This document shows positions 3,992 to 64,000 of a DNA stretch of 64,000 nucleotides, piece by piece (the stretch's first letter is position 1; each line of letters begins with the position of its first letter). The DNA is from Diadema antillarum (taxonomy: Eukaryota). The stretch covers positions 1,364,001 through 1,428,000 of the forward strand of contig NW_027270907.1 in the NCBI RefSeq assembly GCF_040938485.1, given 5' to 3'. The position numbers and the translations under genes are program-made. Below the pieces are notes generated by a model. That model worked only from the letters and a program-made list of their open reading frames with translations, searched no databases and was not told the origin of the DNA.

Positions 3992-5314
3992 ATGGCGTCA
4001 CTAGATACATTCTTCACTTTCGTGACCCTGATGGCAATGTCTTGCAGAATATCCGCTCAGAACCCGACGTCTATGAACTATCCTGAGATAGAGACAGTTG
4101 GCATCGCGGCTCAAAATATGACAACCACAGCTGCACGGAGCAGTCAGGGAACCACTGTTCTACAACGGACAATTTTTACTGTACAGGTGGAAAAAGACAT
4201 ACTCTCGCTTGGGGCAGAGAATTCGTGCTCATTTTGCAAGCCCGGAGAGGATCAGGCTGACACAACACATTATGACAACACTAAAGCAGAGCGGATCATT
4301 GAAAGCCATGCAACACCTTTTGTCGAGCCTGATTGGGTGTGGCAGCCGATCACGTGGTCTTTGCGAATGAAAATCCAAGTGTTCCTGTCAGTGCTCGGTA
4401 TCACCGGGAACGCGCTTGTCATGGCTGTTTTGTTATGTCGCAATGTGGTGAGAAGCTCCGCCGACACTCTCGTCGGGAATCTTGCCACAGCGGACTTTAT
4501 CACGTCTATCTTTATTTTCCCGATACCAGAGGCGGTTCGCGTCCCGAAAACAGCCATTGGGGAAATGTATTGCCGCTTTGTTTATACCTCATTCTTCCTA
4601 TGGGTAAGCATCTTGGGTTCAATCTTCACGCTGACTGCCGCATCGCTGGAGCGATATGCCGCGGTGGTCCACCCCATCCGCTGGAGCCGTTACAAGAAAC
4701 GCCGCCATATGAATCTGTGCCTCGTTCTCATCTGGTTTGCCGCTACGGCCTTACCCTTCGAGCTCCTTCTGTCAACCGGCGTCGGCAAGGCGTCGAGTTC
4801 CTGCCAAGTGGAGCATGCAACTTACGCGGGACAAATCGTCCTTGCATTGGCTACTTTCATTTTCGGCTTTTTGATTCCGGCCTCGACAATGTTAATAACA
4901 CAGCTTTTAGCTGCTCGCGCGCTCTACATGCAATCCAAACGTTTTACGGGAACCTGCGAACGTGGAGACCGCTCTACCGCATCGCTCAGGCACCTTGTGG
5001 CCATGAATCGGCTTTTGGTTATGCTCTTAATCGTTATCATTATTTTTATTGTGTGCTTGGGTCCGCAGGCCACCGCTTTTTTCTTGTACAACCTTCGCGT
5101 CCTTGATCCCAGCTTCCTCTATGGACCAATTGACCGTATTCTTACGGCATTATCTCTGTTTAACTCTTGCGCCAATCCTGTCGTGTATTTGGTTTTGAAC
5201 GCGCAATTCCGCGCAGCTCTCTTAAAATTCTTCACCTGCACCAAGATAAGTGATAACGCCCTATTCGGCTTTCAGGCAGAATCAACCCAGAAACCCCATC
5301 TTCGAAACGTTTAG
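3992..5314 (+). CDS. Intronless class A GPCR, array copy 1 (440 aa; galanin/allatostatin/somatostatin-receptor-like orphan)
   Basis: Seven hydrophobic segments with GN (TM1), NLAxAD (TM2), C..ERY (TM3), W (TM4), ECL2 Cys, FxxP (TM5), CLGP (TM6), NSCANPVVY (TM7) and helix 8 NAQFR..FFTC. Start set at agcATGG (3992), which is conserved in all paralogs and opens a signal-peptide-like stretch. The ORF track starts upstream at 3902. Confidence 0.93.
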   Translation: MASLDTFFTFVTLMAMSCRISAQNPTSMNYPEIETVGIAAQNMTTTAARSSQGTTVLQRTIFTVQVEKDILSLGAENSCSFCKPGEDQADTTHYDNTKAERIIESHATPFVEPDWVWQPITWSLRMKIQVFLSVLGITGNALVMAVLLCRNVVRSSADTLVGNLATADFITSIFIFPIPEAVRVPKTAIGEMYCRFVYTSFFLWVSILGSIFTLTAASLERYAAVVHPIRWSRYKKRRHMNLCLVLIWFAATALPFELLLSTGVGKASSSCQVEHATYAGQIVLALATFIFGFLIPASTMLITQLLAARALYMQSKRFTGTCERGDRSTASLRHLVAMNRLLVMLLIVIIIFIVCLGPQATAFFLYNLRVLDPSFLYGPIDRILTALSLFNSCANPVVYLVLNAQFRAALLKFFTCTKISDNALFGFQAESTQKPHLRNV

Positions 5315-5869
5315 TGCATCTTGCTAAAGCGGAATCAATGTCTGAATTTTGCTCTTGTTCAAACATTTCTCAAGACGACTGAGGTATTTTCAATAGTTTC
5401 CTGCAAGTATCTAATCGTACAATGTATTGCAAATGTATGGGCATCTATACACATCCTAAACTAATTGTTCCCCAAAAAAATGTGATATTGTAAAGGAAAA
5501 GTCCAGGTAAACGACAACCTTGTAAAGAAAAAAATGGCCCACTCAATGAATTGAACTTACGATTTAAAAAATGTAAGGGAACGGAAACACATACACAAAG
5601 GCACAAGACGCTCGCGGTAAACAAAGACGTAGACAGGAAAATCAAAAAGAGACAATGGGAAGGGGCAGGTTAGAGGGAGAACAAAGGGAGGGAAGGAAAG
5701 ATGAAAATAAGAACTATTTGAAAGGAAGTAGAGGTTCGCAGCACACGAAGAGCTATTGCCAAACACTGTCCATCGTCATGGGTGAGGTAATTTACATCAA
5801 ATAAGTTATGCCAATGAGATTAAAAAACAATGTAATTCAAATATCTCAAAACCAACCAAAACTGACTTA

Positions 5870-6130
5870 AACATATCTTAGTACAGCAAGAGTTGGTGTT
5901 TCTTTTAGTTTATCACTCAGTTGATTCCACAAGCTTTGCCCTGTATAAACAAAAATGTTCTGGGCGAGGATGGTGCGGAGTAAAGGGATATGAAACTCAT
6001 TGGATCCTCTTGTAGAGTACTTACGAACACTGACGTTTCTACGAAATACATCATCAGATACTTTGAGCAACTCATTTTCCCTAGAATTTAGCTTAAATTG
6101 TCCAAATTCATACCGTATTTGGAAAAAAAA
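5870..6130 (-). mobile_element. CR1/L2-group LINE, ORF2 C-terminal fragment
   Basis: KYSTRGSNEFHIPLLRT..QNIFVYTGQSLWNQLSDKLK matches the typical end of CR1/L2/Crack-group ORF2 (YxTR...P..RT....Y.GP.LWN.L). Confidence 0.75.
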
Positions 6131-8475
6131 GAGGTTTGGCATGGAGCTATGGTTACGATTTCTTCATGCATTCAAGAATATGTCAAAACTGTGTTCCGAT
6201 GAGAAATATGGCAAATGTATATAGGCAATACAAAATACACTAAAATCCTGTACGTGCCAATCCTTCTCCGGCGATTTTTTTTTTTTTTTTTTTGGTCTTG
6301 TATTTAATGTAAAACACAAGTTATTTTCAAGTCTGATGAATGGAGTAAAGTCTAGGAAAAGTTGTCAATCTGGCAAATTTTTAAAGTAGAAGTTTAAAAT
6401 GATTAAAAGAACAATGAGACCGTTAAAAGTTGTATGTAATACAGAAAACTTTCATCGAATGGGGATATATTACCAAGGTTGGCAAAATGCTTACAGGTTG
6501 GTAGAAGCCATAACTTGAAGAGCTTGCATTCAAGCCTTTACTAAATTGCATGTTAAAATTTTAGAAAAGAGTATTGTGCAATGTCGTGTATGAAACTATG
6601 TTTCATGATCCATCAATTATAACATCAGTTATGATTATAATTTGATGTCCCTGTTGGTGGATGCATTTACATTAAATTTGAAGAGACACATAATGGATCA
6701 CAATCAGAACTGACAACTGCAGCATCCCTTTATCTGTATTCATAATAGGATTGTTAAAGTGATGATTTTATCTTAAATACCTCTTCCTTTCAACATGTTC
6801 AATATCATCATCTGTAGCGACCGTGAAGCATGCAAGAGGTTGCTCTAAACTTGCGAGACTTAATAGCAAGTGACAAATGTTCGCGAATACAACTCCTACA
6901 CTAAATAAGAACAGAGAAATGTAGCAATGTCGAGAAGTCAAGGTAAGTTTTATTATTTGATAAATTCTACAAATTCTCATACGCATGGGATGAACTTCAA
7001 AAAAAATCTTAGTTTGAGATATATTTGGATGCTTGCCAGTTCTGTCAAGAAGAGCCTTGATCATGTTGATATCGTCGTAGTGCATTTCTTTAATTCCTGA
7101 TTGTTTTGTTTGAACCTGTTTTGTCATGTTCTACGCGTTGCAGGAAATTTTCCATAAATATAATGTATACATGTAGCTAGGAAAATGCACAAAGATTAGT
7201 GTTACACTTGATGTAAGTTTGAGGAATAGTGTTACACTCAGTATAAATATAATATATGGCAAAATGTTACACAAACGAAATTCCTGGAAATCAGACAATA
7301 CACTCCACATTTGTTAATTCTCCGTTTTGGTTAATTTCCCGTTGCACGCTGTACAATCCTATCAAGAAAGATGGGTAGGCCTACCCTACAATTTCACCAT
7401 ACTCACAATACCACTGGAATGGAACGGAATGAAGAAAATGTTAAAGGACTCTCATGAAGAATAAAATCCTCTTTCCTAGGATATCGAAAACAGAATTAAA
7501 GATCCTTGAACTTTTGGGAGGCTGAATCTACGTAATCATGTTTTTTGGGGGCACTTTTGATTTTGTTTGTATGTACAGCACACACTTTGTAGCAATTTGT
7601 ACAAGCTGGTATAAACCCTGTTAGAAAGAACACAGTGTTCCACAGTATGGTCAAAGTATGTTCACTACGGTCGACTATATTGAAAATGCTCGAATGTAAT
7701 AGTGTGAAGATGATTTCACACTGAGCGGTTTTCAGAGTGTTCACAATGCGTTCGCATTGATTTGCGTCACATTGTGTTTCACACTGTTGGACACTGTGTT
7801 CTTTCCAGCAAGGCTGTTCTACATGACTTGTTTGTGTGTGTGTGTGTGTGTGTTTGTTTATTGGTTTGTTATTGTCTTTTGAGCATGTTCTTAAACAATG
7901 TTAAATGAAAATTCAAAACAAGTGAAAGACATTCATGTACACGTTCCATTAATTTTGAAACTCTTTTTGGTAGGTCAAATAAGCGAGTGATTTTTAACGC
8001 CCTGTATATGCATCGCATCGTTTGCCGACCACCTGTGGGTCCAGATTCGACAAGAATTTGAGACTTCTAGAGACGTGTTCCAGACAGAGTACATTAAATT
8101 TAGAGCATGATTCCGCATGTCTACTATATGTGCTGAAATTCGAAATTCGATATTAGAACTCTGTTGATATCTGCTTTAGATATTGATCGCTATCTCCAAG
8201 GTTTATAAAAAATTGTATATTCCATGTTAGGTGTCAATATTCTCAAATACCTGTGAAAAAAAAAGAACTTGAATGGAATTTTACTGATCAATCAAGACGT
8301 TCATGTTGTGAATGCCTGCAGAACTTGTTTCACAGGTTGTCAATGCCGGATGTTTGTTGGAATTGTGAATAAGCTAATGGGTGACATCTTGAATTCCGAG
8401 TTACATCGGTTTCCTTGCACTCTTCGCCCCAACCCGGAAGAACAGCGATTGTTGTTTCGATAAAGTGAGTATATA

Positions 8476-9483
8476 TTAAAGAAGAAATCCACTCCAGAAT
8501 TATATCACTTTCATGAGAAAAAGAAAAAGTATTCCCTGCAGGACAGCAGTGACAAAGTGATTAAATGAAGATGTGACATTCTGAAATTTCAAAATTTCTC
8601 GGAAAACACTTCTTGACCAGTCTTTATGAATGATTATTCAAATCAGCAAGTTGATTATGCCATGCTATTACAATTTCTTATTCATTTCATATACAGAAAT
8701 GAAAAAAAATCTCATTTTTTAGCAGTAGGGCCTATAAATATAAAACTGACGTAAAACCATCCAAAATATAAATGAACAAATGTTGACTCTGATATTCAAT
8801 TCAATCGTTAATTTATTTCTATTAAAAAATAGACGTGATGCAAAGCGGTACATGTGTCAGTTTGACTTTCATTCAGCTGGAAAGGACACCTCATTGAACA
8901 CAATATAAAATGTGCACTAGTGGTATTATAACAATAACATAAAGGGAACCATGCACACTTTGTCATGGTAACAAAAAAGAAGTAGTAATCATAACGATGG
9001 AAAAGAGTGTTCCACTAAAAAACCAAGCTTGTAGGACGTGGAACTCTGAAAAGAAAACAACAGCAACACCAATATACCAAAAAGATGTATTCATGTTAAA
9101 TTCATCTATGTACCATTGTACTTTGGTCATTGATAATATATGATGCTGATGATACAAGCATGCTATCAACAATACTTGTTTTAGGGTGCAAATCTTAGAT
9201 TATATTTTGGTACGGTAATATGCTTTTACCCGCAATTAGCTAAAAAAAAAATTCGAATTTCATATTACGTACATCGTGACGTAATAGCAAACAGTAAAAG
9301 TTGTGGGGGCATGACATCATCTCTCTCATGTGAATATTCATAAGGACTGGTCAAGAAATGTTTTCCAAAAAAAATGTGAAATTTCAATATTTCCTAACTT
9401 CCGTATTTCTTTTACGATTTTTGTCATTTTAGAACGATCTGTGGGGATTTCATTTTCTTATTTTGGGGTGGATATTCTCTTAC
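8476..9483. mobile_element. TTAA-type (Kolobok-like) MITE with long imperfect subterminal inverted repeats
   Basis: Left end TTAAAGAAGAAATCCACTCC vs right end GGGGTGGATATTCTCTTA. 8580-8650 is the reverse complement of ~9330-9390. The centre contains host-like sequence, so it could be two separate inverted insertions. Confidence 0.5.
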
Positions 9484-10474
9484 AGGGAGAACAGCTCATA
9501 TTATGTTCGTAACAAGGCGAATTTGAATAAAAGCCTATCTACATTTTGTCAAAATTCATCAATTACAAGCAACATTTTTTTTTTCAAAGGAAGGTGATTG
9601 CTGTTTGATTTGACCGGGATATTTGTAAAATGCACTCTAGAATACACACGTGAGCATACCATATAACGTCACGCTGTTCATGAAGGCAATTCAGAACAAA
9701 CCTTATGATGTTCATGATAACTCGAGTCGGATTATAAGCCAAATTATGTATTGTGAAAGTCATCAATTCTTATAAGGTTCTACTTTCTCAATGAGTGGGA
9801 GATTGTGTGTGATGTATTTGTAACTCTCTATCATACCCTCACGCATACCGTGTAACGTGTTGGTCCACACCAATAAACGATTGAACGAGCAAGAATTAAT
9901 TCATCTGACCGTCTCTACTATTTCTTTCACCTACGTCATCTCTCCTTGTGTATTGTGTATAATAATTCATGAAACACACATTAACACAACAGTGACAGCA
10001 GTTTATCTCTGACAAGAAACGGCCTCAATACGCCTAATACTAGACATCAAACTCACATTGAGGAGCTCTGAATGGGCTTTGCGAAATTTTGGAAAACGAG
10101 CTTCATGGACGTTGCTCTTGGTCATCGGGGATTATATAAATTATGCAAACGCACATGTACAACGTCATTCACAAGAATCAGTCACACAAGTGGCCGTTGT
10201 AGAGAGGTGACCGCTAGAGGACAGTTGGAAGCTAAGACAGATTTGACTGTATAATAGCAGTCTGAGCAGATTCACTGACTATCTTATTTTTATCAAAGCA
10301 CTGTGAAAAACGAGAGCAGAATGCATTTCTTGAAGGCCCAGGCCATAGGGTTATATTTTTCTTCTTTTCTTCTTTAAGGAGGAGGGAGTTTAACCAAAAC
10401 GCAATTGCATCTGATTTATTAGTGGCTAAAAAGTGTTTTACACGTGTGTCACCAACAATTTTTTTTAAGCTTTC

Positions 10475-10514
<40 letters not shown>

Positions 10515-24587: not shown

Positions 24588-25550
24588 TGAATTTCTTTCA
24601 TTAGACACCCATTCGATAGTAGAGCAATTAATCTTAACATTTTTGCCTATTAAAGGCCGTGTCACATCTTTACGGTCAAGCCGTTGGTGCGTTTAGCGAA
24701 GAACAATTTTTATTACCAGGAGGTCCACGCAGATGACCCTCATATGACAGTACCTAGCAAGTATCTCACGCGTAGTCGCCCGGAGGTGCACACGCAAACC
24801 CTTTTTATTCGCAACCATGTTCAGGCCCTGTCACACAATACGGGCTTTTCCAGCATGGGGATATTCCAGCATATGCCTACTGGACAATTTCTGAGGGCGG
24901 ATAAGGATTTGGGCGAGTTTTACATGTGTCTTACTTGCTGGACGCCTTCTACTTAAGTTCTACTTGCGGGTATTCTGTGTGACCTACGTGCCAGGCGCAT
25001 GGTAGGTGACAACTCAGTGAAGGAATTCCACTGAAGGAATGGCAGAAGTCCCACAGAATTTCATAATCTTGGCCGCAAACGGGGACTGCGAAGTTCCTGA
25101 GTGGGAGTTCCTTGCGAGTTATTGTCGCTATTCGGAAGGGCCTCCTCCTGGCGTTCTGCGTTGACCCTTGCGGACAATCCCCGCGATTCACCCGGAAAAA
25201 AAAAATAATTGGTCATGCTCAAAACTTGGCTGCTGGTAAATCGGACTTCTGTGCGCACCTCCGGGCAACTACGGGTGAGATACCCGCTAGGTACTGTCAC
25301 GTGCGGACCAATAGCTGGAAGGTCCGAGTAGCAAAAATTTTCCCCCTCAAGTCAACCCGCAATGCTTCCCCAAACAGGGTGTGACTGTGACAAGACCTTG
25401 AGCATGCTCAAAACTCGTTCCGGGTGAGTTGCGGGGGTTTGACCGCAGAGGTACACGCTGAACAGCAGTAGGAATACCTCGCAGGCAATTCCCACGCAGG
25501 TACTTCGCAGCTAACCCAGATACTTCGCAGTCCCCGTATGTCGATCGTTA

Positions 25551-27233
25551 AGGCGGTGTCACACCTGTCCGGGCAAGCTACGCGGGCTTGTGGCGAGGAG
25601 GTAGTTTAAAGCACGTAGAAGATTTTCCGCGGGCGGACAAGAATGTTTGCAATTTTCGCACTTGTTTCTTACTTACTAGACGCGTGCTACTTAGCTTCTA
25701 CTTGCGTGCGTTCCGTGTGACTCGCGTGAGAGCTTTGAAACCGATCCATTTTCTGTTACGAGCGACTTTCGGGAATTGCGAAGTACCTGCTTTGGAGTTG
25801 CCTGTGAGGTGCTACCGGTAAGGGTTTCCTACTTGTGTTCTGCGCGTACCTCTACGGGCAACTCCCGTGACTCTTCCGGAACAAGTTTTGAGCATGCTCA
25901 AGACCTTGTCATACCGTATCTGGGGAAGTTTTGCGGCTTGACTTGCGGGGAAACAAATTTGCTACCCGGAGCTCTCCGCAGTCGGCCCGAACTTGACAGT
26001 ACCTAGCACTTATCTCGTCCTTAGTTGCCCGAAGGTGCGCACGCTAGTCCAATTTTCCCGCAGCAAAGTTTTGAGCATGACCAAAACTATTTCCGGATGA
26101 GTCGCGAGGATTGCCCGAAGAGTTCCACGCAGAACACCCGTTGGAGGGCCGTAGCTGCCGCAATTCACAGGCATTTGACCCACTTGAAGTAGGTAAGTTG
26201 CCCGCTGATCTATGCCTATGTGAAGGGAGTGCGTGCCAGTTAGTGGGCTCATTCTCTTATTTGTCCTCTGTCCTCTGTGGCGTCGAGGACTATTCCTGGT
26301 CCCTTTCGGACAGGACTTCATCCACCGAATGGACTTCAGCAGCAATTTGATGCATTTGCTGTTAATCTTCCGGGCTTTGTGGCTGTCCATCCACTGGACG
26401 TTCTCTGCCCTTGTGCACTTTCCGTCTATACGGGGCATCTTCACTTCTTGAAAGCTAGTTGACAAATTATTGTTTGCCCATCCACTCGAACCAGCCTATT
26501 GTTCAGGCTAGCACTCACCTCGCAGGCGACTAGTACGCAGATAACAGTTGTGGCGCAGGTACTTCGCAGAGCCCGTATGTCGCCCGTAACAACTATCACG
26601 AAGCTATCACGTGACACCCACGCGCCTAACATGCAGTTAAACGGAATACACGCAAGAAGGACTTAGGTATCACGCGTTTATCATGTAATACCCACGCCAA
26701 ACTCGCCCTTAACCTTGTCCGGCCGCAGAAATTATTCTGCGTGCTGAAAAATCCCCATACGCAATAAGCCCGCTTAGCTGGTGTGACAGGGCCTTTTTTG
26801 GCAGCGGGTAAGTAGAGCCAGCGTGCGCACCTCCGGGTAACTACTTTTGAGATACATGCTAGGTAGGGGAGACCGGGTCTAGTTGTTACAATTTTCACAT
26901 TTTTAGGTCTGTACAAAAAACGAATAGAGGAATCGGCTTCATTTTTGCTTTGAGGATACCTTATTTCCTCCTTTAATTAAAAACAGTACAAACTTTGGAA
27001 GTCCAGATAGTATAAACAAGATATTACGTAATCAATAAACACAAAATTTTGTAACAACTTTCCCCGATGTTGGGGTAATTTGTTACAGCACATGGGGTAA
27101 TTTGTTACACCGTAGAAAGTCAACTCAAATCGGGTAATGCAGATCTGACGTGTTAGGTAATTCTTAATATTAACCTGTCTGGGTGTGCATGTTAGCCTAT
27201 GCTAGGGTGTATGAGTGTGTTGGGTGTGTGTGG

Positions 27234-27270
<37 letters not shown>

Positions 27271-27800
27271 ACCATAAATTCAATTGAAAGTGCATTGGGG
27301 TAAGTTGTTACACCACTCGGATTCTCCAGACGGGTCAAGTTGTTGTAACAACTTGACCCAGTGCGTTTTCAAAAACTTTTCACACGTGTGGCCAATAAAC
27401 AATCAAACATCACGTGTTGCTACTTTCACCAAAAGACTGCCAAAACACGCTTCTTTCAACCACATACTCATCACTTGCTGGAGAAGAATGGATTTGGTGT
27501 AATAAAGAAAAATCGAATTTTTCAAAATTTCAAAAAGTGTTTTTTGGATCTACTTTCTATATGTGACGTCCAGGCAACGCCAGATTTCGCATGCAGAGAT
27601 CGTTGGCTATACGTTTTGATTTGATATTACTTGTGGACGCCCTCTTTTGATCATAATAGAGAAAATGACAGTGTAACAACTTGCCCGTGTAACAACTAGA
27701 CCCGGTCTCCCCTACTGTCATGTGCGGGTCATCTGCGGGGACCTCCGGATAGCAAAAATGTTCTTCGGAAGTCGCACGCAAGGCTGGTGTGACACGGCCT
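25551..27800. mobile_element. Inner PIF/Harbinger element of the same family, inserted in inverted orientation, TTA TSD
   Basis: TTA|AGGCGGTGTCACACC ... GGTGTGACACGGCCT|TTA (14/15 TIR match). Its right arm is the reverse complement of 24654-24870 and its left arm of 27810-28018. Confidence 0.75.
26866..27712. mobile_element. 847-bp Tc1/mariner-pogo-like MITE, TA TSD, perfect 25-bp TIRs
   Basis: TA|GGGGAGACCGGGTCTAGTTGTTACA ... TGTAACAACTAGACCCGGTCTCCCC|TA. Removing it restores gctaggTActgtca as seen at ~25287-25300. Internal GGGGTAAxTTGTTACA repeats are present. Confidence 0.9.
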
Positions 27801-28731
27801 TTAGCCTGATAGCTGAAAATGGATCGGTTTCAGAGCTCTCACACAGATCTCAAGGAAATACACGCAAGTAATAGGTAAACAGCACGTCTTAAGCAGTAAG
27901 ACGTGTTCGCCCGCCAAAAAAAAACACAAAAAAACAAAAACAAAAACCCTCTGCGTGGTGAAAACCCCCTACTCGCACTAAACCCGCGTAGTTTACCCGG
28001 TAAGGTGTGACAGGACCTTAAAGCATTTCGCGAGATGACTAAAATATTCTCATAAATTTCTTGCAAGTATAACTACTGCGTCTGTCCAAAATTCAGAGAA
28101 AAATGGTAGCAAAACAGAACCCCCCCCCCCCGCACCAAAAGAACAAGGAAACAGAGAACAAGGTGAGAAAAAAAATCTTTTGGTCCGAAGTGATATTATT
28201 AATGTTTGCGCCTGACTACGACTATAAACTCTTTATCTCTTCATAGTGTATTTAAAAAATATGACTTACCTCGAGCTGTGCATGTCGATTTATTTATGCA
28301 TTCAAACACCAATTTGTCAAAATTGTCATAAGATGACTAATAGAGGCAATACAAAATATACTTTTGTCCAACATTCGACATTAAAAAAAAAAAACAGAAT
28401 TAGGACCCAGCTCACCCGGAAGGCATATTGAATACAATTGCCATCATACACTTGCCATATCAGTCAAGTCAGTAACTGGCGAAGGGACCGTGTGCGTTTC
28501 GTACAAGCTAATGGTATTCACTGAAACATGAAAAGGTCAATGAAACTTTATTTCTCATGACAACATTTGGGCACCCTTTGTTTCAAAGTTCAGCCGATGA
28601 ATAAACGGGTCTGTTATTTATCTTTTTTCTCTAAATGAATGCCATACTTTAATATGTGATTTCATTTTCAATTCAGATCTTAATTCTCCAATAAATTGAT
28701 AATATTCACCATAATGATTCTCTTCTTTAAT

Positions 28732-28890
28732 CCGGTCACCATTTTCATGAAAGTTTTTAGTGTCTAAAAGTTACTATAGTAACAGTCATGTCACCAGAGC
28801 TTCTCAACCAATCAAAACAAAGGATTTTACTGAAATCGTCAGAGACTGACAACCTGTCATGGCTGACAACTTTCATAAAACGGTGGCCAG
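28732..28890. mobile_element. Small (~160 bp) MITE with imperfect 23-24 bp TIRs
   Basis: CCGGTCACCATTTTCATGAAAGTT vs AACTTTCATAAAACGGTGGCCAG, with internal CTGACAAC repeats. Confidence 0.6.
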
Positions 28891-30882
28891 AATCTTCTGA
28901 TCGATCTAGAGATGAGATTTAACGTCTTACACAGCGTTCAATCAAAAGGAAAGCAAGACTAGTCATTACCCCTATTAAAGTTTCTTCGAATCAGCCACAT
29001 TGGGATAGTCCTGTACAAGACGATAATCTCAAGAAATGTTGTGAAATTTGCCAAGCCCGCCAATCAGTGAACCAGAAGGAGCTACATTCGCCCCATGACC
29101 TACCACCCCACCCCCCACCCCCTTGGATAAACTATAGCAACTGATGTTGCAGTGCTATATAGACGGTGAAAATTAGCGTCCCCATGACTGGATCACTACC
29201 AATATGCTGGTAGCAAGCGCTGTAAGTTTCTTTGGAGTACTCACTGTGTCAGACAGTGGATCCACGATAAAATCCTGTTATGGCGAGGTTGGATACAACA
29301 AGGATCGACTTTTAACTATGTATATCGTAGGGTCCAAACTATCTTTTTTCCTTCACGTGTTTTTTCATTTGAAATTGATTTTTCTTTTCCACAGATGAAT
29401 ATTGGTCCAGAAAAGAAAGAAAAAAAAAACTAAACAGCGTTAAGAACACCAGTTTGTACTGTAACGATCCTGGTAATGACAAAGTTGTTTTAAGCATTCT
29501 GATACAGCTTTCAGAAACAAGGTTGGTTGTTTGTTTGTTGTTGTGTGTTTTTTGTCTTTTCTTTCTTCCAGTGTTCATGTACAGGTAAATTGGTATCTTA
29601 AGCCATTCATATATATAGTCAGAAGTCATCAGTTACTGTAATCAAGATTTTTTTAAAGAAAAGTGGATGTTGTGCCATGTAACTGGACTATTTGCATCTG
29701 TTTATAACTGCACTATATCTCACGTGCATGCTTACGATGATGTAGCGCGTAGCTCTTGGCCGCGCGAATAAATCAATGAACCAGGCCAAAGGTGCGTCCT
29801 GAATTTATACGGTCTCTTTATTTCTCCTTCATAACGTATCCTCTCTTTGTGTACTATGTATGATAATTAATTTGTCAAACACACAATAACGTAACATTCA
29901 CAGCATGTTCTCTCTGCCAAACGGCCTCAACATACTCAAAACGACCACATTAGCAAAATAATTTGAAGTCGGACATCAAACTCGCATTGAGCTGTGAGAG
30001 TAGGTCCGAGAAGGTTTCGACAACGATCTTGATGAACATCGTTTCTGGTATTCGGGAAATAATAACGATACATACAATCATGTACGAAATCAACAAAATT
30101 ATACGCAGTCTCAGCAGATTTATTTGTCGCTAAAGCTAGCACTGTGGAACTTGAGCAGAATATATTTCCATATAAGTTCGGTGCAAGGGTAATTTTATTT
30201 CGTTTAATTTTCTTTTTTCTTTCCTTTCAATTTTTCCTTTCTTTGTTGTCTTTTCTTTTCCTTTATTTCCTTTATGGAGGAGTAAGTTTAAACAAATATT
30301 TGATGTTGCGACACCCTATACGCATATAGTAAAGGTCAAAGTTACACCACTGAGCCGTTTTATGACTTAAGATAATTTTATTTTCTGACTGGTCTATACT
30401 GAACAGCTACTTGCTTTTACATGTATCATTTGAAGTTTTGAGTCAAATTACATTTTCTGACTGTTAGGATATCAAATTTAGCAATGGATTTAAAGACAAA
30501 TGGCTTTCTCATGCATCAACTGTGTGGACATTTACAAAAGATAAAGAAAACAGATTAAACCGGTTACAGGTCATATTCGAATAACAGCATAGCCAATAGC
30601 ATGCATGTAAACCATGTCAGATCACATGAAAATCAGTTTCATAATATATATTATGTATTTTCCATGAAATGTATCAAAAATCGACTTTAAAGCGATAAAA
30701 CAGAAATATAGTTAAACATAGAAAGACAGAAACCGGACCCCAACGATGAGAATGTGCAAACACATTTTTCACTTCCAATAGGTCCTTAATGAAACAAGAT
30801 ATATTTTCTACTGATCATGTGATACTATGCTACAAGTATGTACCATTATTTTGACGTTTGTGTCATCCATGTATATTGTTTG

Positions 30883-31062
30883 NNNNNNNNNNNNNNNNNN
30901 NNNNNNNNNNNNNNNNNNNNNNNNNNNNNNNNNNNNNNNNNNNNNNNNNNNNNNNNNNNNNNNNNNNNNNNNNNNNNNNNNNNNNNNNNNNNNNNNNNNN
31001 NNNNNNNNNNNNNNNNNNNNNNNNNNNNNNNNNNNNNNNNNNNNNNNNNNNNNNNNNNNNNN
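30883..31062. other. Assembly gap (180 N)
   Basis: Run of N. Confidence 1.
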
Positions 31063-32097
31063 TCACCTTCTGAATTGTGGAAGCGGGAGTGACTGGACCG
31101 TAGCACGCCGTTAATGACGGGATACCGATCTGGAAGTTTGTTCTTTTTTATTCAATTTTATGTTTTTTTTCAAATCCAACAAAGAGTGAAAAACAATACA
31201 AAGCATGCTTTTCACAATCACATCGATTTTGATGAATTTGAGGAAAAAATACATAACGCAACGTGGATCGTAAGGTCGCTTATGATAACATAACACCAAT
31301 TCATATTTTGAACGGTTGAGCGAAAAGTATATGGAAATGAGTGGTCCATTAAATAGCAAGGTTTGCAGTACGTGGATCACTCAAAACTTAACATACGAAA
31401 AACGTAATATGTCACTAAACATCGTCATCACATACTGCAATTATTCAAAAGTGCAAAAATTGCAAATTCAGACTAATCTAACAATGTTACAACCTGCACG
31501 CACTATTCGCTGAGCCGTGTGTACCAAACAAAAGAATGGTGGGAAAAAAAAACAACAACTCATAATACTAGATACCAATACATACAAACATGCGCATGCA
31601 CATACCCACACAAACTGAATCATGAATGTGTAAATTAATTTTCTGACTTGAACAAATAAATAAAAGACACTCAAAGGGCATAATTTATATGATTATATTT
31701 TCATCAGACAGCTTATTGCCCATAACAAAATTATGTATTCTCGAAGAGAATCAGTAGAGGCTTTCCTGTCCCATTAATCACTTAATCCTGTTTCCATGTT
31801 TTGACAAAGATCTGAATCGAAGTCTGCAATATAGGGTTCCTCTGTTTATCCAGGAATATGTATATCATTTCTGTAAGGGCTCTCCCCTATATCTCTTTCT
31901 CTCTCCCCCCCCCCCCCCCCTCTCTCTCTCTCTCACTCTCTCTCTCTCTCTCTTTTACTTTTTCTCTCTTTTGCGCTCTGTCTTCAACATCTGCGCGATA
32001 CTACACATCAGCTGACAAGATCTCATTTTTGATTGGTTCGGCTCTTGTTATGTTGTTACGTTCATCTTCCATTTGCAAGAGAAACCAGTCGACAATT

Positions 32098-32130
<33 letters not shown>

Positions 32131-33788
32131 ACCTTGAGAGGTCGTAAAGCTATAGACGTACATGGTCATTCACCCACTATAAAGCGGGCGTTTTGTTACA
32201 TCTCCATATACCAGAAATAATATTTCCGAACATCAATATTATGGGCCCTTCCTCTTGTAAAGACATGAAAGAGAAAAAGAGAACATCGAAATACAGTAGA
32301 TGGCAAATTACTTTCCACAAGATGCTAGCATTTTATATCTGTCCATCTTTGCCGAGATTCGAGCCCATTAGGGTTGACTTTGCATCTATTCTTGATTGTA
32401 TTGATACGCGGGCATCTTTGAGAATGTTACTGCCGCCGATATTGATGTTCGCAGTCGATGTTGTTCATGTTTTCTCATGTTATTGAAGTAATCTTACTCA
32501 CTTATTACAACCTCAGCAAGTATATTGATAGAGTTCTTTTGTACGGAGTTAAAAGCATTTACATTCTTAGCCATCTTTCAAGCGTATGAATCAAGTATCA
32601 ATGAAAGTCTGAGAATTTTCCTCAACTTTCTTCCTTTTGTCCCTTATCTGTCCCCCACCCCTCTCTTCAAAAAGCAACTCTTATCTCTTACAAAGATATT
32701 CTTCAAATGTTATCCTCGCCTCGGTTGGTCAATGATGCTTCATCTACATCATGGAATGTCTTAATGGTTTTCATGTCTATCGTTTGCCTATAACTTATTA
32801 CTTGTTTGAAAACAAGTCAACCACTGACTAAAACAACAAAAGAGAGGACAGATTTCAGTCGCGGCCTGACTTACCCCCCCCCCCCCACACACACACACAA
32901 AAAAACAAACAAAAAACAAAACAAAAGCAGAACAGAACAAAAACGCGCAACACGAGGAGATTTGATAACATCTCATAGACGCATTTGATTGGCTGGTTTC
33001 ATTGAACGTTTTGAAGCGTTATTCGTCCATTTTCTCGGCAAAATCTCCCCTTCTAGAAAAAAGAAAGAAAGAATAGTGATAATGACAATTATGATTTAAA
33101 TGATAATAACAATGATAAATAAGAAACGTTAAAGACGGGTATAAGTTGCCTTAACCGATAACTTGGTTTTCAGATGTGGCATTGGTCTTCTCAAGTGTTT
33201 CCAATCTTGGAAAGAGTACAAGCGCCAGGCTATATCGACTCTCTAGGACGTCTTGGAGGTCTGGTGGTGAGCAGAAAAGATTCCAAGATTCATATCCGTC
33301 ATGTCCCTTTTTTCCACTTGCTATCGGTGGTTTTTGTGCTGAGGGAACGTATTCAAAAGGATATCCGCATCTTGTATCACTGATAATTATTGTATTCTTC
33401 TATGTTCGTCTTCAAAGGTATTCTCTTCCAAAATTTCTTTTATATTGTAATTTCGATGTTTGTTCAATGTACACTGTAAATTTGTATTTAGATATGATTA
33501 GTTTCTTGGCAATGCAACTAGGTTACTTACTTGCTCACTCGCTAATTTGCTACAAATACTTTCGACTGACCAAATTGATTAGTGAAAGACACTGTACCCA
33601 GCCTAAGGGTGGTTTACCTAATAAACACTAATTTGGTACAAGTAAGTTAAGACTTGATAAAAACTGAATTCCAAATTAGCTAGCAAAAGAAAAATGCAAT
33701 TTGTATTACTACTTTGGAATAGAATTTAAAGCGTCAGAACAACCGTAACCAATTCAAGGACTTTCAAGTATTTCCCCAACCATGCCTA

Positions 33789-34141
33789 GGGCGGTGAGTT
33801 GGCTCAGTCGGTAGCGCGTCTGCCTCACGATCACGCGGCCCGGGTTCGAACCCGAGTCTGGACTGAGCAATGTTGTGTGTAAACATACCGTTCCCTCTAG
33901 CAAGAGGCAAAACACTCTGTCCCTCGGATAGGACATAAAATGGAGGTCCCGTGTATGAGAGAGTCACAGCTCATGCACGTAAAAGATCCCGCTTCATTCA
34001 TTCATCGCAAAGAGCAGGGTGTCTAACCCGGTGAAGTGGTCCTACCCCACATCCAACTGGACCTCATGGAAGACCAGCTTAGTGTAGCTGAATATGGGCT
34101 ATCCAGCCATCTTCACAGATGGAAAATGAACAACAACAACA
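33789..34141 (+). mobile_element. tRNA-derived SINE with Deu (DeuSINE-type) core and (CAA)n tail
   Basis: A box TGGCTCAGTCGG (33800-33811) and B box GGTTCGAACCC (33843-33853). Core GGATAGGACATAAAATGGAGGTCCC...CACGTAAAAGATCCC...AAGAGCAGGGTGTCTAACCCGGTG resembles the Deu-domain consensus as I recall it. CAA tail at ~34129-34141. Confidence 0.8.
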
Positions 34142-34825
34142 AGAAAAGAAATTCCTTCTGATGACGGTTATTCCTGCTGTGTTCGGGAATATAATACTGT
34201 GGTATATTATGGATCTATGTAAGAAATACAAATTTAAAAGGACAAGCTGTGTTAACGACTTTAAGTAGACTGTTGTAAAAAAAAAAGGAATGGCTTCTTT
34301 TCTAACAATGCAAAGCAATAGGAAACAAAGAAACATCTCCGATATGAAAAAGAAAATACCTTTCATATCGTTAATATTTTTTCTTAATAAATGTGATTAG
34401 AGATACCAGTTGCATCCATGTTTCTAAAGTCTTTCAGCATTACGTATTTTAATCATTATGTCCGCTTATTATTTTGCCACACTCATTTTCTGATTACTAT
34501 TGTTATAACGTAAATAGATTTCTCCAAAAAAAAAAAAAAGAAAACTAGTGTTGACCATATTCAAGCCAAGTGCTGCTCATATTTCAGTTACGACACTTGC
34601 AAAACGTTGCTTTAAAAGTATCATTCTCTTAAACAGGTCAAAGTTTGATAACGCTGGTTATGATAATCTTGGAGGTCAGAATCATACAAACAATCCTACT
34701 AAAGAGAAAAACAAATCCACCAAGTTCAATATGTAACCATGTCTGATTGCAATTCTCATTTCTTTGCCTAATTTGATCTCTATCCAGGATATTTTCTTTC
34801 GAAAATCAACTTGAGTAGGCACAGC

Positions 34826-36163
34826 ATGGCTACACACGATGCATTTATCATTTTCGTGACCTTGCTGGTAACACTTTGCAGAATGTCTGCTCAGAACTCG
34901 ACATCCGTCAACTATCCGGAAGTAGAGACAACCACAACACCCGAAGTTGGTGTTGCTGCTCAAAATTCAACAGTCACATCAAGGGGCTCTTTAGGAACCA
35001 CCGTTCTGCAACGGACAACGTCTGTTGTAGAGTTGGAAACAGAAATATTGTCGCTTGGAGTCGAGAATGGACGCTCATCTTACAAGCCCGGAGAGGGTCA
35101 GATGGACACAACACATCACGATGATATTAGAGAACAGCGGAGCAGTGAAATTCATACGCCACCTTATCCCATCGCTGATTGGGTGTGGCAGCCGATCACG
35201 TGGTCTTTGCGATTGGCAATCCAAGTTTTCTCGTCAGTGCTGGGCACTAGCGGGAACGCGCTTGTCATGGCAATTCTGTTACGTCGCGGAGTGGAAAGGA
35301 ACTCCGCCGACACTCTCGTCGGGAATCTTGCCGTAGCGGACTTTCTGACCTCCGTCTTTCTTTTCCCGATCCCGGTTGCGGTCCATGTCCCGAAAACAGC
35401 CATGGGGGAAATGTACTGCCGAGTTATTTTTACCTCATTCTTCCTGTGGGTAAGCATCTTGAGCTCAATCTTCACGCTGACTGCCGCATCGGTGGAGCGA
35501 TATGCCGCAGTGGTCCACCCCATCCGTTGGAGCCGCTACAAGAGACGCCAACACGTGAATGTTTGTCTCGTCTTCATCTGGTTTGCTGCTACGGGCTTGA
35601 CCACCGATCTCCTACTAGGAACCGGCGTTGACGAGGAGTCGAGGTCTTGCCAAGTTGAGCATCCAACCAATGCGGGGCAGATCTTCTTGGCAACGGTTTC
35701 TTTCATTTTGGGATTCGTGATTCCCGTCTTGACAATGCTAGTAACACAACTTTTGGCTGCTCGCGCTCTCTACACTCAGTCCAAACGTTTTACGGGGACC
35801 TGCAAACGTGGTGACCAATCTACCGCATCATCACTCAGACATATCGTAGCCATGAATCGAGTCTTGCGAATACTCCTGATACTGATCATTATCTGCATTG
35901 TGTGCTGGGGTCCGAACGCCACTTCTTTCTTCCTGTATAATGTGCATGTTATTGACCCCAGTTTTCTTTATGGACCAGTTGACCGTGTGCTTGTGATGCT
36001 GTCCCTGTTCAACTCCTGCGCCAATCCCGTCGTGTATTTGGTGTGGAATGCGCCATTCCGCGCAGCTGTCGTGAGGTTCTTCACCTGCACCAAGATAAGC
36101 AATAACGCCCTCTTCGGTTTGCAGGAAGAATCAACCCGGAATACCCACGTCGAAAATGTTTAA
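34826..36163 (+). CDS. Intronless class A GPCR, copy 4 (445 aa), closest to copy 3
   Basis: ERY, CWGP, NSCANPVVY. The TM4-ECL2-TM5 peptide WFAATGLTTDLLLGTGVDEESRSCQVEHPTNAGQIFLATVSFI is identical to copy 3. Confidence 0.93.
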   Translation: MATHDAFIIFVTLLVTLCRMSAQNSTSVNYPEVETTTTPEVGVAAQNSTVTSRGSLGTTVLQRTTSVVELETEILSLGVENGRSSYKPGEGQMDTTHHDDIREQRSSEIHTPPYPIADWVWQPITWSLRLAIQVFSSVLGTSGNALVMAILLRRGVERNSADTLVGNLAVADFLTSVFLFPIPVAVHVPKTAMGEMYCRVIFTSFFLWVSILSSIFTLTAASVERYAAVVHPIRWSRYKRRQHVNVCLVFIWFAATGLTTDLLLGTGVDEESRSCQVEHPTNAGQIFLATVSFILGFVIPVLTMLVTQLLAARALYTQSKRFTGTCKRGDQSTASSLRHIVAMNRVLRILLILIIICIVCWGPNATSFFLYNVHVIDPSFLYGPVDRVLVMLSLFNSCANPVVYLVWNAPFRAAVVRFFTCTKISNNALFGLQEESTRNTHVENV

Positions 36164-36423
36164 TGAATCGGTTATACATCTTAGCACAAACATGTCAACA
36201 ACACCGTTTCCCCTGAAGAATGTTGAAATCTGCCAAAAGGAAAATCAACATCTAAAATTTGATCAGTTATTAGTACTCTCGACACATACTTCGTTGTTTT
36301 CATCACTTTTGTGCAAGTAACTGCCAGACAAACAAGAATCATGTTAAAAAAAAAATGAGTTTGATGCGATGTCTAATATGTGGCCTTGGGATGAAGAAAT
36401 TAGAGCCAGAAGGAGAAAGTTTA

Positions 36424-36424
<1 letters not shown>

Positions 36425-36464
<40 letters not shown>

Positions 36465-36487
36465 GAGAAAGAGAGAGAGAGAGAGAA
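36425..36487. repeat. (GA)n-rich microsatellite
   Basis: Directly visible. Confidence 0.95.
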
Positions 36488-61566: not shown

Positions 61567-63301
61567 TATAACTGGAATAAGATGCGCTGTACGACAGTTT
61601 GGTCTTCAGATTTGGCATTGGTCTTTCTCAATGAAAGTGTCCTCAGTCCGGGAGAAATTACAAGGTGCATGTCGAACCAGCTTTCTACCACATTGCGTTG
61701 GAAGTCTGGTGGCTCTGCCGGAAGATTTATAAGACTTTCCTTCATCTCTAAACGCCTCGTAAACAGCTCTTGGTTAGTGACAACAACCCTCCTCGCCTAA
61801 ATAACTTTTGTGCTGAGGTAACGTATGACATGATCTTCTCTACTTCATTCGTTGATTCTCGTTTTTTAATCTAAATCATTCTGCTTCATATTCTCCTAAA
61901 ACCTTTTTAAATGTATCATCTTTTACATTTGTACTCTACTTGGATAATAAGCTTGCGTCAGATTTTCATTGGTTTCATGACAATAAAAACAAGCTACCGT
62001 TCGTTAAATTTCCTGATATACATGTAGTTTCGACTCACCAAACCAATTAGTGAGGAAATGTTTAAATCTATGTGAAACACACCAACAAAACATTACCTCA
62101 TATAAATATCATGATTTACATGCATATAAATATTATATAAAACCCGCTATTCCTGGCCTTGTGCCTGATATGCCTAATACTATCTTGTTGGGGGAATCTT
62201 CACTATGTTTTCATATTATCTGTTTTCACACTAAAGATAAAAATTCAAATCCAAATGATATTATGCAAAAAAAAAACCCGAGAGTTTAATCCCTTGTGTC
62301 TTAAATCTGATTGTGGCATTCTTGAGAAAGAAATAAAACTATATTCCCTCACATGTGCCATTTTTAAGCACACCAAAAGTACGTATCTCATCAACCTTTT
62401 TTTTTTCTTCCGTTTTGTTTTTCGTCCCTGCCATACTTCCCGTTATGTCATGGATAGTTCAAGAGGGCCTACACTTCTAGGGACACATAATACGAACTGT
62501 AAAAGCTTCTTTGAAAGAGTCCCAGGACGACGGTAACCCATTAGACAAAGTTGTAGAAAACTTCAGATGCAGAAGCAAATGCTTCCCCTTTAAAAAAAAA
62601 ATCCCCTTAAGAAATAAAAAGACACTTTGTTTCCATAATATGCTGATGTTTGAGACATCTCAGATCCACTAAACATTCATTTCATTTATTTTTTTCACAT
62701 TCTTTAAATTACATGATCTGAAGTCAATTTTCAGTGTATTTTAGGGCACAGAATGTGGTGGGCTTGTTTTACCATACAAGGAACATGACACAGAGCAATT
62801 GCTACGCTTTGTATATGGAATACTTGACATAACCGATATGAAATTGAATACATTTCATCATGTTCATTTTGGTAATGTTTTTTTTTTCTTTCTATCTCAA
62901 CGAAATAGAATAGAGAGGTATCCACGTATCCCACGTCTTTTAGCTTTACATTATACTGGGCCTTGTTTTGCCACATATATTTTCTGAGTACTTTCGTTAC
63001 AACATAATTATTTTGATATTTCATCAACAAAAAGGAATTTGGGTTGATTTTCTTAGTCAAGCGGTGTTCACATGTATAATTGTCCATTTCAGTTAGAACT
63101 CTTGTGAAACGCCTTTTGAATCCAAACCCACATCAGCCCACTGGTAGTCGTACTGATGAACTTCATCATCCGCATCAGACAACCAATCCCACAAAAAACA
63201 AACAAACAGACAAACACCAAGTTGAATGTTCAACCTATTCTAATACTTGCACACAATTCCTTGCCTTATTTTGTCTCCCCAGATTAAAGAAAAAGAAGAA
63301 G

Positions 63302-63333
<32 letters not shown>

Positions 63334-63400
63334 GAAGAAGAAAAAGAAAGATATCAGTGAACTTCTTCATGGTCAGTAGCAGTAGACCGAGCATGGCTTC
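59390..63400. repeat. Upstream flank of copy 7, paralogous to 43840-45178 / 46720-51670 (copy 6 flank)
   Basis: Collinear blocks, e.g. 59410-59880 vs 46730-47200, 60620-61030 vs 48035-48470, 61570-62050 vs 49960-50440 and 63050-63290 vs 51360-51610. Confidence 0.85.
63289..63345. repeat. (GAA)n microsatellite about 50 bp upstream of the copy 7 ATG
   Basis: Directly visible. Copy 6 has only a short A-rich tract at the homologous site. Confidence 0.95.
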
Positions 63401-64000
63401 ACTGGATGTAGGCCTATTGGTCATTTTCATCACCTTGAGAATTACGCCTTGCACAATGTCTGCTCAGAACTCGACATCCATCAACTATCCAGAAGGAGAA
63501 ACAGCTCCGACACCGGCAGTTCATGTCACATCTCAAAATTTGACAGCCACATCAGGGAACGGTCTAGGAACTGCAGTTTACCAATGGACAACGTTTGTTG
63601 CAGAGTTGGAAACTAATATACTGTCGCTGGGGGCCGAGAATGCACGTTTGTCTTACACGCCCGGAGAGGATCAGACCGATACAACGCATTATGTTGACAT
63701 TAGATCACAGCGGAGCAGTGAAACTCATACCACACCTTTTATCGACGCTGATTGGGTGTGGCAGCCGATCACGTGGTCATTGCGAAATGGAATACAAGCT
63801 TTCCTCTCCGTCCTCGGTATTGGCGGGAATGCGCTTGTCTTGGCGGTTCTCTTACGTCGAGGTGTGGGAAGAAGCTCCGCTGACACTCTCGTCGGGAATC
63901 TTGCCGCAGCGGACTTTCTCACGTCCGTCTTCATATTCCCGATCCCGATAGCTGTTCGCGTCCCAAAAACGGTCATTACTGAAATGTACTGTCGTTTTGT
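63393..64000 (+). CDS. Class A GPCR copy 7, partial (runs off the window in TM3), closest to copy 6
   Basis: Hand translation from ATG 63393 gives MASLDVGLLVIFITLRITPCTMSAQNSTS...DWVWQPITWSLR...GNALV...NLAAADF...EMYCRF with no stop to the window end. It is absent from the ORF track, presumably because no stop is reached. Confidence 0.88.
   Translation, partial: MASLDVGLLVIFITLRITPCTMSAQNSTSINYPEGETAPTPAVHVTSQNLTATSGNGLGTAVYQWTTFVAELETNILSLGAENARLSYTPGEDQTDTTHYVDIRSQRSSETHTTPFIDADWVWQPITWSLRNGIQAFLSVLGIGGNALVLAVLLRRGVGRSSADTLVGNLAAADFLTSVFIFPIPIAVRVPKTVITEMYCRF

Follow-up and report, generated by a model that had tools for sequence, protein, structure and literature searches.

Which signals does a long row of intact, closely similar receptor genes serve in the sea urchin Diadema antillarum, and how did that row come about? 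The question is raised by a stretch of 64,000 nucleotides, hereafter the window (C19:1364001-1428000, C19 being the contig that bears it in the 1.75-Gb assembly of this species), which contains seven reading frames for class A, or rhodopsin-type, G protein-coupled receptors (GPCRs). These belong to a tandem array of the Diadema lineage, set within an echinoid-only radiation known as the surreal-GPCRs, and we consider it reasonably probable that they serve as a sensory repertoire for external chemical cues. As gene clusters go, the locus is genuine but rather ordinary. Through its grazing, D. antillarum is a keystone species of reefs, and it has gone through mass die-offs; its aggregation, alarm response, spawning and settlement depend on chemical cues. 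The array offers a well-defined candidate receptor family that is present in Diadema and largely missing from other model urchins, with two haplotypes and a comparison with Diadema setosum already to hand.

A one-strand array of fifteen receptor genes

The window carries seven open reading frames (ORFs) of the family on its plus strand, six of them complete and the seventh, g7, truncated by the window end (Table 1). Reckoned from a methionine that is conserved across all alignable copies, successive starts from g1 to g7 are 11.3, 8.0, 11.6, 4.9, 11.9 and 11.7 kb apart, in agreement with an earlier note on this DNA, made from its letters alone, which had described at least seven same-strand paralogs at intervals of 5-12 kb. 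The six complete copies encode proteins of 440-446 residues and match the Pfam family 7tm_1 (PF00001) over profile positions 1-260 of 260, with E-values of 1e-36 to 1e-42 and scores of 125-146 bits against a cut-off of 30.5. Pairwise amino-acid identity between the window copies is 65-78%, and the differences consist of substitutions and in-frame indels and nothing else, which bears out for the six complete copies the description of uninterrupted frames. When all seven proteins were used as tblastn queries, these seven loci alone were returned from the window, without pseudogene pieces or fragments. The three gaps of undetermined bases (N) all fall in spacers and keep a distance of at least 1 kb from the nearest ORF, and therefore no reading frame spans a gap; for the first and third, continuity is supported by paralogous or duplicated copies of the spacer that are colinear with it.

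Extending the count along the contig, as the same note had proposed, a six-frame search of the genome places 15 members of the family on C19, from position 1,303,032 to 1,437,938 (135 kb), all open and all on one strand, of which the window holds the middle part (a08-a14, 7 of 15). Copy a06 is ten codons short at its end; the D. setosum protein that falls with it in a 90% identity cluster likewise has 434 residues. Ten-kilobase pieces of the C19 flanks contain no long ORFs. A dispersed copy of the family lies elsewhere, on C142, with a haplotig on C427 (70% identity).

A second contig, C7, carries 16 copies in colinear order, and the flanks of positional pairs between C7 and C19 align end to end at 92-99.5% identity. 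The D. antillarum assembly is documented as keeping both haplotypes, with 84% of BUSCOs duplicated and a haploid size of about 0.7-0.9 Gb (PMC13511894). Because the flanks are colinear and both haplotypes are retained, C7 and C19 are two haplotypes of one locus, and a true segmental duplication is ruled out on the same grounds. All 15 C19 alleles are open; 4 of the 16 on C7 are frameshifted (two 1-bp deletions, one 4-bp insertion and one 11-bp deletion) and another has a 57-bp in-frame deletion, the five disrupted alleles being L029, L030, L032, L033 and L031, and C7 has one extra copy (L012). At the quality value of the assembly, 44.5 (PMC13511894), less than one error would be predicted in that much sequence, and most of the frameshifts are therefore probably real null alleles. 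The C7 "alleles" at a01, a02 and a15 are very divergent, with a synonymous divergence (dS) of 0.13-0.28 compared to 0-0.06 in the other pairs.

Position within an echinoid radiation

In a maximum-likelihood tree of 68 proteins, from which reference echinoderm neuropeptide receptors were left out, the Diadema array forms a single clade with full support (100 in the Shimodaira-Hasegawa-like approximate likelihood ratio test, SH-aLRT) on a stem of 0.8 changes per site. Its sister group consists of two Strongylocentrotus purpuratus proteins (P0011 and P0016) and one from Lytechinus pictus (P0009), with a support of 98, and the two together are nested among echinoid GPCRs. Copy numbers stand at 15-16 in Diadema versus 1-2 in camarodonts. 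The next-best match beyond the family in the D. antillarum genome has 47% identity, and behind it follow more than 1,500 first-look candidates at about 40% (1,579 first-look candidates in this own-genome search). When 1.84 billion cluster representatives were searched exhaustively with HMMER, the family's own cluster came out at 76% identity and all else at 47% or below, and a profile search found no additional members outside Diadema. As nearly all alignments of the exhaustive search begin only at residue 92-139, no relatives of the ectodomain are detectable beyond the family. Tree, exhaustive search and genome search thus agree on a rhodopsin-type subfamily that expanded independently within echinoids and has no orthologues outside them, and its members are arranged in tandem, as 15 same-strand copies over 135 kb in D. 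antillarum and three copies over 21 kb in D. setosum. The clustered, lineage-expanded rhodopsin-type receptors of sea urchins, to which the window had been likened from its letters, are in this respect a good match.

The D. setosum array is syntenic and consists of one 21-kb locus with three intact same-strand copies; the spacer between g6 and g7 is colinear with that between Ds1 and Ds2. The closest pairs across the two species are Ds2 and g7 (dS 0.09, ratio of nonsynonymous to synonymous divergence, dN/dS, 0.27) and Ds3 and a15 (dS 0.21, dN/dS 0.22). Since D. setosum carries a syntenic array with paired orthologues, the expansion is older than the split between the two Diadema species, and it either postdates the split from camarodonts or followed a burst that came after it.

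The S. purpuratus sister gene bears an NCBI name of the aminergic/TAAR type. An aminergic identity is ruled out for the array by the absence of the TM3 aspartate (TM, transmembrane helix): TM3 of g5 (residues 198-226) contains no Asp, as had been noted from the letters, and position 3.32, where aminergic and TAAR receptors have it, is Leu once a two-residue insertion in this helix is allowed for.

Receptor anatomy and predicted structure

An AlphaFold2 model of g5, built on 54 aligned sequences and with a mean predicted local distance difference test score (pLDDT) of 74.5, has seven long helices and a helix 8, with pLDDT values of about 88-96 in the core, and disorder at residues 14-113. A short strand in the motif that precedes TM1 adjoins the first extracellular loop (ECL1), and ECL2 folds as a hairpin. 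Searched against the PDB with Foldseek, the model gives at least 500 matches at E <= 0.001, the 50 listed being class A receptors, and the top fits are class A peptide receptors with target-normalised TM-scores of 0.77-0.80.

Every copy starts with a hydrophobic core (maximum nine-residue Kyte-Doolittle mean of 2.1-3.5) and then has small residues, which suggests a signal peptide that would be cleaved. The ectodomain that follows is 91-97 residues long, 20-33% Ser plus Thr, net acidic and furnished with one to four N-glycosylation sequons, and is thus a candidate for glycosylation. Directly before TM1 lies a Trp-rich motif that is almost invariant among the copies and packs against ECL1 in the model. 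The class A microswitches (N1.50, D2.50, ERY, W4.50, P5.50, (C/S)WxP, NPxxY, F8.50 and the TM3-ECL2 cysteines) recur throughout the 24 sequences compared, save for W6.48, which is Leu or Ile in the subclade of a07, g1 and g2. This toggle Trp of the CWxP motif (equivalent to residue 360 of g5) is Leu in a07 (at C19:1359649), in g1 and in the C7 alleles of these two, and Ile in g2; the other twelve C19 copies retain it.

All copies, and their echinoid relatives, carry a two-residue insertion in TM3, Thr-Ser at residues 203-204 of g5 (window 40344-40349). It sits in upper TM3 between the disulfide Cys and ERY, so that the distance from Cys to Arg is 27 residues compared to the usual 25; in the AlphaFold2 model the helix is broken at this point, and the HMMER alignments to both GALR1 and GPR183 are gapped here. 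The insertion seems to be a shared mark of the echinoid radiation as a whole.

Constraint, variation and exchange between copies

Over the 15 C19 copies, which differ among themselves by a dS of 0.17-0.6, Nei-Gojobori (NG86) estimates of dN/dS are 0.32 for the whole gene and 0.24 for the seven-helix (7TM) core, with 0.12 in helix 8, 0.17 in TM3 and 0.18 in TM2, but 0.45 in TM4, 0.43 in TM5, 0.53 in the ectodomain and 0.77 in the signal peptide. Between the orthologues of the two Diadema species the ratio is 0.22-0.27. We further fitted the codon models M0, M1a and M2a in a pruning-likelihood implementation of our own, with the topology fixed from a general time-reversible (GTR) tree and no ancestral states. 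Model M0 gives omega = 0.42, and M1a places 55% of sites at omega 0.12 and 45% at omega 1. Purifying selection on every copy, as the earlier note had it, is therefore borne out by the pairwise ratios, the site model and the species orthologues alike, and a dN/dS near 1 across all sites is not seen.

The variation is unevenly spread. Amino-acid entropy averages 0.66 bits in the outer, extracellular halves of the helices versus 0.33 bits in the inner, intracellular halves (p = 2e-5), in line with the expectation that variation would lie on the extracellular side, and it is highest in TM4, the top of TM5 and ECL2. By identity, the ectodomain stands at 56%, TM2, TM3, TM7 and helix 8 at 85-87%, and TM4, the most variable helix, at 61%. 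The extracellular halves of TM4, TM5 and TM1 thus differ among copies together with ECL2 and the ectodomain, while the intracellular face is nearly fixed, including the inner helix halves, the second intracellular loop, helix 8 and the cytoplasmic extensions of TM5 and TM6, which are highly conserved. The map first drawn from the letters holds for the variable ectodomain, ECL2 and top of TM5 and for the near-fixation of TM2-TM3 and TM7-helix 8; it had missed TM4 and the conserved TM5 and TM6 extensions. Every copy, then, is constrained, with an outer face that is free to vary, and the variable sites behave as nearly neutral.

The copies do not share a single history along their length. The three thirds of the gene yield different trees, each of which rejects the trees of the other two (approximately unbiased, AU, test, p <= 4e-4), and in sliding windows the nearest paralogue changes along the gene. 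An example of this is g1, to which a07 is closest overall, but g5 at nt 151-375, g2 at nt 376-750 and g6 or g7 at nt 750-900; likewise, g4 and g6 match at 97% over nt 601-750. On this evidence, the paralogues are mosaics made by gene conversion. The comparison with D. setosum points the same way: 20 of the 54 differences between g7 and Ds2 (L044:9938-11275) cluster within 175 nt (nt 540-714), a segment from the top of TM2 through ECL1 to TM3, and at most of these sites the other paralogues share the D. setosum state. The dS of this pair, 0.09, is about twice the flanking non-coding divergence of about 0.04. Clustered differences and raised dS together would be a sign of continuing exchange between copies.

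What the receptors may detect

A gene that is present in one or two copies in camarodont urchins has been expanded in the Diadema lineage, and the family evolves through tandem duplication, gene conversion, which yields mosaic genes, and loss, the other haplotype with its null alleles and extra copy being a part of this process. Because the intracellular face is nearly fixed, all copies would use the same transducer, with shared G-protein coupling, and because the extracellular halves, ECL2 and the ectodomain differ among them, they would bind different ligands. The locus fits chemosensory GPCR families in its anatomy, lineage restriction, tandem order, single coding exon, gene conversion and segregating nulls, as well as in copy number, conserved inner face and variable outer face, and these traits point to a chemosensory role.

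Several observations weigh against this view. A search of Logan found no transcript-like contig with exactly these proteins, and among solved structures the closest relatives of the array are those of endogenous-peptide receptors. Positive selection was not found among the 15 copies: M2a adds 1% of sites at omega 2.4 and is no better than M1a (likelihood ratio statistic 2.2, p = 0.33), so that the "ligand-diversifying" cluster of the earlier note, understood as positive selection, is not upheld. In the absence of a statistical signal of diversifying selection, the extracellular variation could reflect relaxed constraint alone. Gene conversion breaks the single-tree assumption of all three site models; as recombination makes single-tree site tests liberal, the negative result of M2a is conservative, yet conversion could also explain part of the apparent "fixation" of TM2-TM3 and TM7-helix 8. 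Finally, the accessions of the S. purpuratus sister genes are absent from the supplements of PMC7042368; the array is placed at the level of the radiation and not of one of the surreal-GPCR groups A-F.

The receptors might instead be duplicated galanin/allatostatin-A/somatostatin-type receptors for endogenous peptides, signalling inside the animal, an explanation that we regard as rather unlikely. In its favour, the closest solved structures by sequence and by fold are the CCK-A, galanin R1, somatostatin, opioid and apelin receptors (best sequence matches: CCK-A, E 2e-22; mu-opioid, 6e-22; GALR1, 9e-21), the copies go under the NCBI names of allatostatin-A, galanin or somatostatin receptor-like proteins, peptide receptors typically have a long N-terminus and a hairpin in ECL2, and the copies are under purifying selection. 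However, the copies share only 20-26% identity with these receptors, and do so to about the same degree with several peptide-receptor families that are unrelated to each other, GALR1 doing no better than CCK-A or mu-opioid; one-to-one orthology with the galanin or allatostatin-A receptors of bilaterians is seen neither in the tree nor in the exhaustive search, and the galanin/allatostatin-like ancestor once suggested for the cluster comes down to nearest similarity, shared about equally with CCK, somatostatin, opioid and apelin receptors. The names given to the copies conflict with each other, and over the whole radiation automated names extend to TAAR-, mu-opioid-, dopamine D3- and melatonin receptor-like; such mutual conflict is what is expected when true orthology is absent. 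The clade is, moreover, nested in an echinoid-only radiation and far richer in Diadema than in camarodonts, and frameshift alleles and a copy-number difference between the haplotypes of one animal would be unusual for essential neuropeptide receptors.

Annotators should read no orthology into the NCBI names (allatostatin-A, galanin or somatostatin receptor-like), and the gene models call for caution too, as several lose the signal peptide through an internal Met and some intact copies are unannotated. The annotated models P0001, P0002 and P0006 (425-426 residues) begin at an internal Met about 20 residues past the conserved one and for that reason lack the signal-peptide-like segment. Read from the conserved Met, g2, g3 and g5 are absent from the protein collection, and at the 21-kb D. 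setosum locus (L044) just one of the three intact copies is a called gene.

A bolder version of the chemosensory reading, to which we give less credence than to the peptide-receptor explanation, is an individually variable, Diadema-specific repertoire in which conversion would shuffle segments of the binding pocket, and in which the ectodomain, a lid formed by the Trp-rich motif and the TM3 bulge would make up an undescribed device for ligand capture. If this were true, new specificities would arise combinatorially, haplotypes would differ in gene content and null alleles, and the capture module would be tuned to species-specific cues, for instance alarm or spawning signals.

It is quite improbable, in our view, that the array encodes immune or danger sensors akin to chemokine or formyl-peptide receptors, deployed on coelomocytes and diversifying against pathogens. 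The Foldseek matches include chemokine, chemerin and GPR15 receptors, haplotype variation in gene content and gene conversion are also features of sea-urchin immune gene clusters, and the ectodomain is acidic and variable; but there is no signal of positive selection, no sulfotyrosine-type or other diagnostic motif was seen, although no test was aimed at such motifs, and the same features suit chemoreceptor families equally well. That the array is largely non-functional, its frames being open through recent duplication or repair by gene conversion, might be read from the 4 of 16 frameshifted C7 alleles and the 45% of sites in the omega = 1 class, but is hardly credible, given that all 15 C19 copies are open over about 1.33 kb despite their dS of 0.17-0.6, core dN/dS is 0.24, the D. 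setosum orthologues are open with dN/dS of 0.22-0.27, the microswitch residues are all retained, and homology between paralogues stops within a few bases of the stop codon, where the flanks are decayed.

Upstream blocks, spacers and other features of the window

Homology between paralogues begins about 35-120 nt before the ATG and ends almost at the stop codon, the DNA on either side being decayed. A pyrimidine tract followed by CAG lies about 60-110 nt before the ATG in 16 of the 16 copies examined, and 2.2-3.7 kb upstream of every copy there is a block of about 500 nt that is 66-85% identical between copies. The blocks start after a (CA)n run, which is missing at g5, and finish in GTAAGY or GTATGA; a genome-wide search with that of g6 gives 26 matches, all beside family members, the dispersed copy on C142 included. 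The block may represent a promoter and a non-coding exon 1, followed by an intron of 2-3.6 kb. "Intronless", as the copies had been called, is thus right for the coding sequence (CDS) but probably not for the gene, which would contain an intron in view of the donor-like end of the block and the acceptor-like site before the ATG. Between species the block is no better conserved than its surroundings (96.7% versus 95.5-96.6%), and constraint on it is therefore not proven.

In g1 and g2, frames of 257 codons overlap the receptor CDS on the same strand in another frame. The same alternative frame is open for just 67-188 codons in the remaining copies, and as genes these frames were rejected, since an openness that varies from 67 to 257 codons among copies looks compositional.

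Transposable element (TE) content was judged by genome-wide repeat counts alone. The spacers had been described as full of decayed TEs, and dispersed repeats are indeed present, among them an older 400-nt element, but one repeat is young and no TE protein domain was detected by Pfam in ten spacer ORFs of 114-151 residues. The young repeat, in the spacer between g3 and g4, is present in the genome in at least 40 copies that are 95-97% identical (first-look candidates: 4,045) and has no Pfam domain, and is for this reason probably a non-autonomous element, recently active. Within the region 24700-28000 it is nested in an older element, the two being related in inverted orientation at 74-76%, and C7 shares the whole arrangement at 98%. 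Between g5 and g6, two tandem units of 2.9 kb are bordered by the second and third gaps; from the g5 stop codon to the g6 upstream block there are 7.0 kb on C19 versus 4.0 kb on C7, which has one unit fewer. The duplicate may be a true duplication confined to one haplotype, or else it may have arisen in scaffolding, with the versions of both haplotypes set one after the other.

Table 1. Positions of receptor genes and other features in the window (position 1 is its first nucleotide).
Feature	Position	Strand	Remarks
g1 (array copy a08)	3992..5314	+	complete class A GPCR CDS, 440 aa; 7tm_1 E 1.6e-37; Trp 6.48 replaced by Leu
g2 (a09)	15262..16587	+	complete GPCR CDS, 441 aa; 6.48 is Ile; C7 allele with 1-bp deletion
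g3 (a10)	23250..24587	+	complete GPCR CDS, 445 aa; ORF and Pfam
g4 (a11)	34826..36163	+	complete GPCR CDS, 445 aa; ORF and Pfam
g5 (a12)	39738..41072	+	complete GPCR CDS, 444 aa; reference for residue numbering and AlphaFold2 model
g6 (a13)	51674..53014	+	complete GPCR CDS, 446 aa; C7 allele with 11-bp deletion
g7 (a14)	63393..64000	+	first 202 codons; complete in the genome, 446 aa
g7 acceptor-like site	63268..63282	+	pyrimidine tract and CAG, 110 nt before ATG
g1 upstream block	1401..1927	+	2.6 kb 5' of ATG; ends in donor-like GTAAGT; predicted promoter and non-coding exon 1
g2 upstream block	11488..12049	+	conserved among copies
g3 upstream block	20661..21177	+	conserved among copies
g4 upstream block	32100..32594	+	conserved among copies
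g5 upstream block	37477..37788	+	conserved among copies; shorter than the others
g6 upstream block	48002..48505	+	conserved among copies; query of genome-wide search
g7 upstream block	60577..61078	+	conserved among copies; compared with D. setosum
Alternative frame in g1	4333..5106	+	257 codons, overlaps GPCR CDS
Alternative frame in g2	15606..16379	+	257 codons, overlaps GPCR CDS
Older dispersed element	8795..9194		400 nt; from genome-wide repeat counts
Young dispersed repeat	25548..26865	.	about 1.32 kb; g3-g4 spacer
N gap 1	30883..31062		spacer
N gap 2	42064..42270		spacer
Tandem 2.9-kb spacer units	42271..48136	+	42271-45174 and 45191-48136; 93-96% identical
N gap 3	47730..47858		spacer

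Comparison with known systems

Vertebrate odorant receptors have a single coding exon preceded by one or more non-coding 5' exons, lie in tandem arrays, evolve by birth and death and gene conversion and segregate null alleles, and their variable positions fall in the outer half of the helix bundle while the intracellular face is conserved. The Diadema array shares these traits, its 5' exon being a prediction. As subfamilies, however, the two are not homologous; the nearest solved relatives of the array are peptide receptors, and the Diadema proteins differ in a disordered ectodomain of about 95 residues (predicted to be glycosylated), a signal-peptide-like start, the Trp-rich motif and the TM3 insertion.

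The galanin/allatostatin-A, somatostatin, opioid and CCK receptors (7wq3, 7ezh, 7xmr, 8f7x) provide the best matches in sequence (E 1e-20 to 1e-22) and in fold, and have the class A microswitches and the ECL2 beta-hairpin in common with the array. They differ from it in an identity of 20-26% that favours no one family, in the TM3 insertion (compared to GALR1) and in the lack of one-to-one orthology.

Closer in kind are the ApORs of the crown-of-thorns starfish, 12 rhodopsin-like GPCRs within 140 kb in both orientations, for which expression in sensory tentacles and tube feet has been shown (PMC5442662). The scale is comparable (12 genes in 140 kb in the starfish, 15 in 135 kb in Diadema), and in both the transmembrane helices are conserved and the loops diverge. 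In contrast to the starfish genes, with their two orientations and their demonstrated expression, those of Diadema lie on one strand and are known from the genes alone.

The closest likeness is to the surreal-GPCRs of S. purpuratus (Raible et al. 2006, Dev Biol 300:461, as cited in PMC7042368, PMC5442662 and PMC10855541). Independently expanded and tandemly arrayed, these occur for the most part in pedicellariae, tube feet and spines (PMC7042368, PMC10855541, PMC5442662). Both they and the Diadema array are rhodopsin-type, expanded independently in echinoderms, arranged in tandem and devoid of clear orthologues outside their lineage, and outside Diadema the array has its closest relatives within the same radiation, among genes of S. 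purpuratus and Lytechinus. The likeness, which is drawn at the level of the radiation and not of a Raible group A-F, has its limit in copy number, the present subfamily being expanded in Diadema (15-16) and represented by one or two genes in camarodonts. GPCRs are not mentioned in the two D. antillarum genome papers, and we therefore take the array to be undescribed. The kind of system to which it belongs has been known since 2006; the Diadema array is no new kind of system and extends that pattern.

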